From positions 310,001 through 374,000 of the forward strand of contig NIVC01000230.1 of assembly GCA_002269645.1 (NCBI GenBank): a DNA stretch of 64,000 bases. The letters are read 5' to 3'. Below, one piece after another: positions 32,001 through 35,000 of this stretch. Under the pieces are notes generated by a model, which made no database searches, was not told where the DNA came from, and worked only from the letters and a program-made list of their open reading frames with translations. This stretch comes from Macrostomum lignano (Eukaryota). Position numbers and translations under genes: made by a program. The first letter of the stretch is position 1; the number at the start of each line of letters is the position of its first letter.

Positions 32001-35000
32001 TACTGAACTCGCAGTGGTTAGTCAAAATATGACTTGTCCTTAAAACTGAAGAGTAGAAAATTTGGCGAACAATCTAGTAAAAATTAGTCGGAAAATGCCA
32101 ACTGTTGCATGCAGGTTTTGCTTCACCTGAGCAGCAAGTCGGCCATCTCCGACCGCCCGTGGGCCTCGGCAATCTCCAGCGCAGTCCTGCCGGTCTCCCA
32201 CTCGGCCAGTCTCCAATTCGCCCCGTAGTCCAGCAGAATTTGGCCAATTTGGCGCGCAACTGATGTGGGCGCACGGACTACTTAATTGTCGTTTATATAG
32301 GACGCAACACGCACGATTCGTGTAATTTTTTTTGGAGGCTGAAGTTCCCTTAGCGTATACTATAGCTTTAGTTTTAGCAAGGCATTGAAATGTTCTTATC
32401 ATAGAATGCAGATCTTTTTTAGAGTGTTTATTGTTTTTGTCCCATTTTTTATCAATACATAATTTCCGTCTAGCTTAGTACTGTTTAGAAGTGTATCGTT
32501 TATACATAGCTAGCCTAACCTAATTTAAATTAGAATTTGTATGTAGACCATAGGCCATCTATGCAAGTAAACTCTTTGGAAATTTATCAACATTTGCTAG
32601 GCCTAGTCAGGGCCCACTGCTACTACCCTGGCGATGATAAAATATAATGTAGCTATTTGTTATTACAGCATAGGGGCCTGCAGTATTTCATTATTAAATT
32701 AGTAGGCATATACCTACATTATCTAGGTGACTAGGTATAGGGCCTAGCCAACTATTTTATATCATTACCATTGGCATTAGTTGGTATTCTTGGTAAACCT
32801 ATAAGCTATCTCTTCTATATATTATTGAGTATCTATAAATAGTATTTGATTGTTTAGAGTTAAAAAATTTTTTAGAAATTTTAAATAATTTGGATTATCT
32901 AATCTATACTTTAATAAGATTTAATAAGACTTTAATAAGGCTATACTTTAGGGTATAGCTAGCTAGGCTTAGACTAAGATAATATATAAAATATAGGCCT
33001 ATTAATATAAGTATTTAACTTTAAGTATTCTATTCTTATTAATCATTTTACTGGTAGGCCTATATATTTTTGTATGACTGATGTCAGTCTATTTATAATT
33101 ATAGGCCTATGCTTCAAAAATGTATACTGCATTAATATTTTTGCTATAGGCCTAGAACTTATAGATATTTATGTTTTTAAGAATGTACTCATCTTATATT
33201 CTTTCAGAGGCATATAGGGCCTAAGTTGTTTTAATCAGTTTTTCTGTTAATATATAGAAATTCAATGGTGGCACAATATCTCTGGTTAAGGGGGGGGGGA
33301 TAGCAGTTAGATGGTCACCCATGGAAGTATTGTATTCAGAGTCACAATATATCCACTTTCAATTTTACTCACTTAAATAATAAATTCAATTTATCTCACT
33401 TCCAATTTAAATCTTAAATATACTAAATCTCTAAGGTTTGTATGCTTGAATGTCCATAACGCTCTAGAGACTACAATTCTTCACTAATTTTGATCGCGTT
33501 TTCGCCAAAATATTCAAAATTGTCTGGAATGAAGACGGTTAAAATGTCATGCTAGGTATGAATAATATTATAAGTATTAACTTGTTTTATTTAGGTTGTG
33601 TATCATTAAGTATTCATGCTATGCAGCTATTTTCCTTATCCTTTTCAGGTGACTTTCAATTGGATGGTCTGGAGAAAGAATTCTCTATCTATAGGCAAGG
33701 CCATGGAGGTTGCTATTTTGTATACATGGAACAAATACTCAATTGGTTGGCTTCCTCACAAACAAGTGTACACACATCTTAAGGAGGATGCTCCAGAACT
33801 GTTGTGACAATGAAGTGTCCAAGGCTGAGCTGTTACAACTGTCACTGTACTGCTGTTACAACAAGTAGCTAGTCCATATGGCACCTGCGAGACTCTCTAA
33901 AAGGAGGTGTCAATTGTCTGTATAGATTTCTGCAAAGCTTTTAACTTCATCAGCCAGGTGGCTATTGTATTGCTTCTCCTGCAGCATGGAGTTCAGTTCT
34001 TTTGTATAGCTACTGTCCAGACGATCATGGACCTCTATAGCTTGTCCAAGACTTTAGTCTATATTTACCAACTAAACCTGATCATTTACCACCAACTCGT
34101 GTCCAGGTGCAAGATTGTGCACTTTATCCTCATTTCTATTTGTTATTCTTATTGACTACATGCATTTCATTCGGCTGGCTTTGCATGATGAAGACGACTT
34201 TGAGTGGTGCCTTGCCAGATTTGCGTACCGTTAGTTTTTTGATGCAATGTTATAGCAAGTTATCTTTATACAATAGATCATTTTGTTGTAAAATATTTCG
34301 TTGTACGCTTTTGTTGATACTGTTTAAACTGCATTTTTTCGCATTTGCTTTATACAAGAAACCTGCTAGCTATCTTATACCACTTTAGTATATACTTTTT
34401 GCATACATTTTAAAAAGGCCAATAATATTAATATGGCATAAAAATATTCAATGGCTACTAAGACTCAAAATTCGTGTTCTTAAAATCTTTCGTCTTAGTT
34501 CGTCTTGACTCTATTTATCCGATACGATTGGCGCAGAATCAGTGGTATCTGTTATATGTCTGTACATCTTGCGATAGGTTTTCTTATGACCAGGTCAAAA
34601 AGGTCCGCTTCACAGTAACAATGAACAGCTAAAAGAATCGTTTAAAATAAGTGCTATATCAAAATGAAGAGCTATATTTTGTGCTACAAATGCCGCACGT
34701 CGAGACTCGAAACTCACCAGAAAAAGTTAGTTTTCGTCGCTTGAAACTACTTTCTAAGGTTTCTGCATCGTTTTAATCATGCATTACATATGTTACATGA
34801 ACAAGGACTAAATTATTTGTATCCTGTGAAAAAACGACACTTCGGCGAGTTTCTGGAGTCGGGCTACATAAAATTGAATATTCAGCCTCCAATAAAATTT
34901 GCACGTTTTGCGCGTGTCGCGTCCTTCTACTTAAGTAGTCCGTGTGTGGGCGCCCTACGAGCTGCCACCATTATCGCAGTGTGGCCTCTGGAGTCTCTGG

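Follow-up and report, generated by a model that had tools for sequence, protein, structure and literature searches.

A P-like DNA transposon in the ankyrin exon of a Macrostomum lignano kinase gene, most likely a disruptive insertion

Does a DNA transposon that sits in a coding exon disable its gene, or can the element be removed from the message? This question is raised by a 64,000-nucleotide stretch of the genome of the flatworm Macrostomum lignano (assembly GCA_002269645.1, contig NIVC01000230.1, positions 310,001 to 374,000 of the forward strand; hereafter the window, with positions counted from its first letter), in which an element of the P superfamily interrupts the ankyrin exon of a predicted kinase gene on the minus strand. 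A first-pass annotation of the window proposed that the element might be spliced out at the cost of a single amino-acid change, as a possible case of intron gain, and added the caveat that the allele might simply be a null. Our analysis indicates that chance does not account for the element or for its place in an exon, but readily yields the splice-compatible geometry, and that a recent loss-of-function insertion, giving a disrupted allele, is probably the correct reading of the locus.

The element is a cut-and-paste transposon within a coding exon. It is 2,673 bp long, has a GC content of 34% compared with about 50% in the flanks, and is bounded by terminal inverted repeats (TIRs) of 14 nt and by a target-site duplication (TSD) of 8 bp, both of them perfect (Table 1). 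Inside the TIRs, and separated from them by a short spacer of unequal length, lies a pair of subterminal arms of 45 nt that are 82% complementary. Removal of the element with retention of one TSD copy restores a single open frame on the minus strand, MKEVV...HTAIMVAARRAPTSVARQIGQILLDYGANW...ADLLL, which matches Pfam Ank_2 with E = 4.8e-28; the nucleotide sequence of the reconstructed empty site reads ...GCTCGTAGGGCGCCCACATCAGTTGCG.... Across the element there are 68-77 stops per frame in the orientation of the gene.

The affinity to the P superfamily, put forward in the first-pass annotation, is well supported by sequence comparison. An 8-bp TSD does not by itself discriminate between superfamilies, because hAT elements likewise generate duplications of this length. 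The assignment is carried by a single coding remnant of 62 open codons with the motif FQxDxLExEFxIYRQxxGG. Searched by phmmer against 1.84 billion representative proteins, a 44-residue stretch of the element retrieved the protein P0026 at E = 4.4e-4; three of the four matches from this library (P0023-P0025) were discarded as repeat or FG-GAP proteins. Comparison of P0026 with the window by tblastn returned the remnant with 42% identity across 62 amino acids (E = 5e-9), and alignment of the remnant by hhalign with a profile of 23 relatives of P0026 (A1) gave a probability of 97.8% and E = 1.2e-12. A P-type transposase combines an RNase H fold, split by a GTP-binding insertion, with a P-type C-terminal domain; only the 62-codon remnant survives in the element, and the link from its family to P-type domains is indirect. 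In a metagenome contig from ENA (ERZ27249947:k141_789574, here L001), P0026 is encoded 145 nt downstream of an open reading frame (ORF) with a match to TNP-like_RNaseH_N (1.3e-6) and a weak match to the GTP-binding-insertion domain. Within the family, Tnp_P_element_C is matched by two of the 23 members (1.1e-4), TNP-like_GBD by two and RNaseH_N by one. The best match of the family profile among solved structures is the Drosophila P transposase (6p5a_B), at a weak E = 0.066; this structure was reached by the 23-sequence profile alone, and searches of PDB sequences with the remnant or with P0026 by itself gave no P-transposase match. Together with 22 relatives, P0026 defines a conserved C-terminal family in which E..EFG, YxxGY and SRGKL are invariant and which is mostly without Pfam coverage.

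The ends of the element provide a second line of evidence. The terminal motif of the transposon family is CAMGGACKACTTAAGTAG, and in the form CAMGGACKACT it occurs four times in the window against 0.12 expected, at both ends of the element and at both ends of a 94-bp miniature relative. L001 has a single occurrence, at 131 nt beyond the stop codon that ends the P-like ORF (matched in 0 of 200 shuffles), and the L001 terminus CAAGGACTACT shares it with the window element CACGGACTACT and the miniature CAAGGACGACT. The P-like transposase locus of L001 (3-2132) is partial, and that contig has another end sequence of similar kind at about 2795-2823. The miniature element has an inverted repeat of about 25 nt and a TSD of 8 bp on both sides, and is located in AT-rich non-coding DNA; its presence suggests more than one round of mobilisation of the family in the Macrostomum genome. 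Its CAAGG end and its TSD fit hAT consensus patterns as well. Membership of the hAT superfamily was rejected, as the coding remnant and the common terminal motif lead to P-type transposase domains.

The copy in the exon is, to judge from its frames, a non-autonomous derivative with one surviving coding fragment. No Pfam family was matched, even at E = 10, by four of its ORFs (63-93 amino acids) or by the three forward frames of its central region, and neither a THAP nor any other domain was found in the ORFs or in the three forward frames of the central third. A missing THAP domain is no argument against P-like descent, because it is expected of a non-autonomous copy. The element thus resembles the P-element/THAP9 (TNP-like) superfamily in its 8-bp TSD, its TIRs and a remnant homologous to a family with P-type domains, and degenerate non-autonomous copies are typical of that superfamily. 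It differs in that neither the THAP domain nor the catalytic core survives, in its flatworm host and in a C-terminal region that is mostly outside Pfam. The TIR of the Drosophila P element is 31 bp long and starts with CATGATG, in contrast to the 14 perfect nucleotides of the window element (about 25 nt in the miniature), which start with CACGG or CAAGG.

The palindrome TAGGCCTA is present in five copies inside the element (32598-33154), against nine in the whole window, and the copies are often embedded within longer imperfect repeats, ATATAGGCCTAT; they may be a nested repeat or filler without relation to the transposase. A scan of 28-38 kb with Rfam gave no match.

The interrupted exon appears to belong, as had been proposed, to an ankyrin-kinase gene. 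The phase-2 donor 32127/32126 joins the acceptor before 31146 in frame, so that ankyrin repeats and a complete kinase domain are read in one frame; GxGxFG, AAK, HRD, DFG and APE motifs are all present, and the remainder of the gene is intact. With junctions taken from reading frames, ankyrin and kinase exons would make up one gene in a coherent model. A distant Macrostomum ankyrin protein aligns on either side of the insertion. The restored exon found only three matches among 5.8 billion proteins, the best with 38% identity, which suggests a fast-evolving, lineage-specific gene; exact look-ups of the truncated 126-residue ORF and of the upstream ankyrin ORF in protein collections returned no record. 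Farther upstream, an ankyrin exon at 37099-37622 (minus strand, phase-2 donor ACG/GTGAGA) can be joined to the interrupted exon in frame through a small exon at 35389-35448 (minus strand), with an AAG acceptor at 35302/35301 as the only option; use of a nearby CAG acceptor at 35326 leads to an in-frame TGA. The gene may start at ATG 35307 or farther upstream. Three large tandem arrays lie in or adjoin the introns of the gene: (AACT) x182 at 31211-31939, a 33-bp unit x34 at 29599-30730 and a 26-bp unit x49 at 35600-36866. Minisatellites that mimic long ORFs are unusually abundant throughout the window.

The most likely history of the locus can now be set out. A non-autonomous element of the P superfamily would have transposed, probably recently, into the coding ankyrin exon in antisense orientation to the gene; we infer both the recency and the loss of function from the sequence, and perfect TSD and TIRs fit a young insertion. 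Translation reading into the element would end at the in-frame TAG that the first-pass annotation had pointed out, six codons inside the element. The default product would be a truncated protein of 126 residues, unless the element-carrying message were degraded. The GT...AG route would then be a by-product of the landing position, with no property of the element behind it, and transcripts are unlikely to be processed mainly in this way. Rescue by skipping of the exon was rejected on two grounds: the likely start codon would be lost with it, and neither of its possible lengths (500 nt counted from the ATG, 494 nt if the alternative acceptor is used) is divisible by three.

The spliced route deserves closer description, as it was the basis for the proposed intron gain. 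It uses a host-supplied GT just upstream of the element in gene orientation, together with a NAGNAG acceptor; coordinates and frame arithmetic were recomputed and are correct. The donor is in phase 1, after the first base of a codon, and both acceptor AGs (32282-32281 and 32279-32278) belong to the left TIR, whose minus-strand sequence is TTAAG/TAG/TCCGTG. A junction between 34959 and 32277 replaces AARRAPTS by AALRAPTS, an R-to-L change with no net change in length, and joining 34959 to 32280 gives AALVRAPTS, with one residue added (net +3 nt); both products are in frame and free of stops. A third in-frame acceptor, with 32259 as first exon base, had been overlooked: with the same donor it yields AALARQ and a net loss of 18 nt (six codons), and it has the best acceptor score among the in-frame options. 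When the same element with its 8-bp TSD was inserted by simulation throughout the exons of the gene, with a GT allowed up to 20 nt upstream and the same two element-borne acceptors, 25.5% of the 1,176 positions gave an in-frame, stop-free GT...AG route, and 14.5% gave one that altered at most one codon. The geometry is therefore unremarkable, since an equivalent is offered by chance in 15-25% of insertions.

Splice sites were scored with a generic metazoan matrix, and the main weak point of the route is its donor. Its 2.6 bits compare with 7.6-12.5 bits for five local donors, four of them GTGAGT and one GTGAAG, so that it falls 5-10 bits lower, with a C at position -1. All five local acceptors are CAG; those proposed are AAG (-4.25) and TAG (-3.13) and rank 165 and 143 of the 221 AG sites on the gene strand. 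The suspicion of a weak donor was thus borne out, whereas the missing polypyrimidine tract, raised alongside it, counts for less, as the local tracts are also poor. In-frame routes that delete few residues depend solely on this host GT at 34958; the alternative donor at 35194 (5.2 bits) would remove 109 codons. The element's own GT (34930, -0.35 bits), combined with its own AGs, leaves 28 or 31 nt behind and is out of frame, which argues that the transposon family is not built as an intron. A donor of consensus strength is found within the element (Table 1), as are acceptors on the gene strand at 34823 (7.0 bits), 33523 and 32627, in a range of 7-9 bits. All of these internal sites lie beyond the in-frame stop, and they could define element-derived exons with premature stops, for example an exon of 106 nt at 34823-34718.

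Several points weigh against a disruptive insertion. The scoring matrix is a generic metazoan one, and the local comparison covers only five introns inferred from reading frames, three in the host gene and two in a neighbouring LIN9 gene. Because pyrimidine tracts are poor at the local acceptors too, which score between -1.5 and 13.7, the acceptor score has little power to discriminate. The possible intron upstream of the interrupted exon needs the AAG acceptor at 35302/35301; if this acceptor is real, the species does splice at AAG. The two exon halves have both kept a fully open, ankyrin-like frame, which fits a very recent insertion but also continued selection on an element-free message. 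The fate of the message is itself read from the DNA, and the description of the allele as simply null may be too pessimistic. No evidence, on the other side, places intron gain above the null allele of the first-pass caveat.

A more novel reading is that the insertion is tolerated because the element is removed from the message, either as an incipient spliceosomal intron or by excision of the SOS type in a lophotrochozoan. We consider such tolerance unlikely on the sequence features at hand; of the two modes of removal, SOS-type excision is the more plausible. SOS splicing, described by Zhao et al. (2025, PMC12779559), is independent of the spliceosome and needs the ligase RTCB together with AKAP17A and CAAP1. 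Pairing of the TIRs is necessary and sufficient whatever their sequence, every exonic Tc1, Tc3 and Tc4 insertion tested was excised, and several cut sites near the repeats are used, so that junctions are heterogeneous, mostly without GU-AG, and only some products are in frame (PMC12779559). The pathway functions in human cells too (PMC12779559), which suggests that it is an old animal pathway. Applied to Macrostomum, this would mean that the ends of the element pair in the pre-mRNA and that the element is excised imprecisely by the AKAP17A/CAAP1/RTCB pathway, with mixed frames and a hypomorphic allele as the result. SOS excision would be a likelier RNA-level rescue than GT...AG splicing, because the ends can form a stem of about 70 nt. 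Of the features of an SOS substrate, the locus presents an exonic DNA transposon and, in silico, base pairing of the TIRs.

The predicted pairing is strong. The first and last 80 nt or so of the element, each with 25 nt of flank, fold into a near-continuous duplex of -105 kcal/mol, compared with -35 +/- 5 for shuffles; for a mini-construct of 214 nt the fold reaches -104.8 kcal/mol (z = -13.2), and none of 200 shuffles was as good. The fold was computed with an artificial loop, however, and the arms are 2.5 kb apart. Within the ankyrin repeat, the insertion point separates the two helices and falls in a segment that was already longer than usual (AARRAPTSVARQ), and small insertions or deletions may be tolerated between ankyrin helices, judging from the ankyrin consensus. 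The closest parallel is the removal of Tc1, Tc3 and Tc4 in C. elegans (Rushforth & Anderson 1996; Zhao et al. 2025, PMC12779559), which likewise concerns exonic cut-and-paste transposons with premature stops and TIRs able to pair, and in which cutting close to the TIRs can bring the reading frame back at the cost of a small insertion or deletion. The window element differs in being P-like and not Tc1/mariner, in its much shorter perfect repeat and in being known here as DNA only. The perfect repeat amounts to just 14 nt, the rest of the stem being interrupted, whereas the elements in PMC12779559 had repeats of at least 54 nt; SOS excision is moreover imprecise, and such alleles are mostly purged according to the same work. 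A literature search found no paper mentioning AKAP17 together with flatworms. On balance we regard SOS excision at this locus as a rather doubtful explanation.

A different possibility is that gene function does not depend on the interrupted copy, which would be either one haplotype of a polymorphic insertion, with the other haplotype intact, or a redundant or decaying paralogue; the insertion would then be without consequence, and no removal from the RNA would be needed. The perfect TSD and TIRs are as expected of a young and possibly segregating insertion, and a fast-evolving gene with so few relatives would agree with this explanation. The rest of the gene is intact, however, with every kinase motif in place, and neither a second copy nor an empty site is found in the window: the check proposed by the first-pass annotation returned the junction itself as the only match and no paralogue. 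A metagenome scan with the 22-nt repeat core gave no match. The one metagenome match to the 22-nt empty-site junction, in a contig of 62% GC, was set aside as chance, as its flanks differ and it has no other similarity to the window. Taken together, these observations make a non-functional or polymorphic copy a quite improbable account of the locus.

The remaining explanation is a nascent spliceosomal intron. The U1 particle would use the host C/GTAGGG at 34958, with the NAGNAG of the TIR or the CAG at 32262-32260 as 3' site, and the gene would stay functional with the spliced form as a significant isoform. The three in-frame, stop-free products share one donor, which is also the donor in all three of the top-scoring in-frame pairings that delete few residues, and poor pyrimidine tracts are tolerated at local acceptors. 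Introners offer a precedent, being TIR/TSD transposons in coding sequence (Huff et al. 2016; Gozashti et al. 2022, PMC9860276; reviewed in PMC11282704). In some known families the 3' site is part of the element, whereas the 5' site comes from the TSD or the adjacent exon, a mode matched by the layout proposed here; some families add a few codons, and most are removed without change in mRNA length (PMC9860276). The window element lacks both the short length of introners, its 2.7 kb far exceeding their median lengths of 30-654 nt (PMC9860276), and their self-contained in-frame splice sites. Introners also occur as many near-identical copies that form introns of unrelated genes; the 64-kb window covers a single exonic copy and one related copy in non-coding DNA. 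A second precedent is maize Ds (Wessler, Baran & Varagona 1987, as cited in PMC12779559), also a non-autonomous exonic element with GT...AG sites in or near its ends and imprecise removal, the mechanism put forward in the first-pass annotation; in that case removal was shown by cDNA, whereas the sites in the window are predicted and weak. Ds and Tc1 insertions are described as removed from exons through cryptic sites, again as cited in PMC12779559. The mini-construct fold adds a further obstacle: base pairing takes in the GU of the donor and, of the two TIR acceptor AG dinucleotides, every nucleotide except one, which would further hinder the spliceosome. With a donor below every local donor, AAG and TAG acceptors where the local ones are CAG, a geometry expected by chance in 15-25% of insertions, terminal GT and AG sites of its own that miss the frame and stronger internal sites that would compete or create element-derived exons, intronisation found no positive support, and we consider it the least likely of these explanations and very improbable.

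Table 1. Features of the interrupted ankyrin-kinase gene, the transposon and its miniature relative, in window coordinates. A slash marks the exon boundary of a splice site.
Feature	Position	Strand	Evidence
P-superfamily DNA transposon, non-autonomous	32272-34944	+ (coding remnant on +, antisense to host gene)	TIRs and TSD
TIR, left arm, CACGGACTACTTAA	32272-32285	+	14/14 complementary to right arm
TIR, right arm	34931-34944	-	14/14 complementary to left arm
Subterminal inverted-repeat arm, left	32299-32343	+	pairs with 34881-34925; part of predicted RNA stem of about 70 nt
Subterminal inverted-repeat arm, right	34881-34925	-	pairs with 32299-32343
TSD copy, downstream in gene orientation, TGTGGGCG on + strand	32264-32271		same 8-mer on both sides
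TSD copy, upstream in gene orientation, TGTGGGCG	34945-34952		8/8 identical
P-like transposase remnant, 62 open codons	33591-33776	+	tblastn, phmmer, hhalign
First in-frame stop TAG on read-through into the element	34927-34929	-	six codons inside element
Interrupted ankyrin exon, upstream half	34945-35307	-	ATG 35307-35305, 121 host codons; open frame and Ank_2
Interrupted ankyrin exon, downstream half	32127-32263	-	ends at donor CTCAG/GTGAAG (GT 32126-32125)
Kinase exon 1 (GxGxFG ... AAK)	30783-31146	-	Pkinase match; boundaries inferred from frames
Kinase exon 2 (HRD ... DFG ... APE ... stop)	29016-29510	-	Pkinase, 5.4e-21
Proposed cryptic donor GT, CTC/GTAGGG, host-supplied	34957-34958	-	2.64 bits; rank 24 of 143 GT sites
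Third in-frame acceptor CAG/, first exon base 32259, host sequence just past TSD	32260-32262	-	score 0.92
Consensus-strength donor within element, CTG/GTGAGT	34716-34717	-	10.5 bits
Related 94-bp miniature element with its TSDs	51289-51398 (element 51297-51390)		TIR CAAGGACGACTTAAGTAGAAGGACG, TSD ATGTGAAT on both sides

Other parts of the window contain both mobile-element remains and host genes. At 2990-5547 (plus strand), transposase-like ORFs with a weak match to DUF4218 (6.4e-4, below the cut-off) are interrupted by a simple-repeat array that translates as (LSIY)n; we take DUF4218 to belong to transposases of the tnp2/CACTA type, and the region is probably another decayed DNA transposon. 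An ORF at 39429-39908 (minus strand) resembles the C-terminal end of a piggyBac transposase (DDE_Tnp_1_7, weak, E = 0.18), followed by a cysteine-rich tail, and is likely a piggyBac remnant. Three consecutive ORFs at 46449-49159 (plus strand) have a C-terminal PHD finger as their sole family match (5.2e-7); they may belong to a mobile element or encode a chromatin protein that lacks annotation. The neighbouring host genes include a very GC-rich ORF with a RhoGAP domain at 26267-27304 (plus strand, 2.1e-18); a LIN9 homologue lies at 53204-55644 (plus strand; DIRP 9.3e-37, LIN9_C weak) and is most similar to a protein from a tapeworm, with 68% identity.

As it stands, there is nothing unusual in the insertion of a defective DNA transposon into a coding exon, and both aspects of the locus are of known kinds: elements of the P superfamily, and exonic transposons that are removed through cryptic sites or by SOS splicing, such as Ds and Tc1. 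Its value is modest: it documents, in a flatworm, a lineage of the P superfamily with its terminal motif and a conserved, largely unannotated C-terminal region, and it is a naturally occurring case in which the handling of exonic DNA transposons by animals can be put to the test. Either mode of removal, if true, would be a natural RNA-level rescue of a transposon-interrupted exon outside nematodes, and in a superfamily for which such treatment has so far not been demonstrated. Removal with GU-AG boundaries would represent a step towards intron gain, and heterogeneous removal without them would place SOS splicing beyond nematodes and human cell lines. Repair of the message, if it takes place, would thus bear on the origin of new introns and on the breadth of conservation of SOS splicing.

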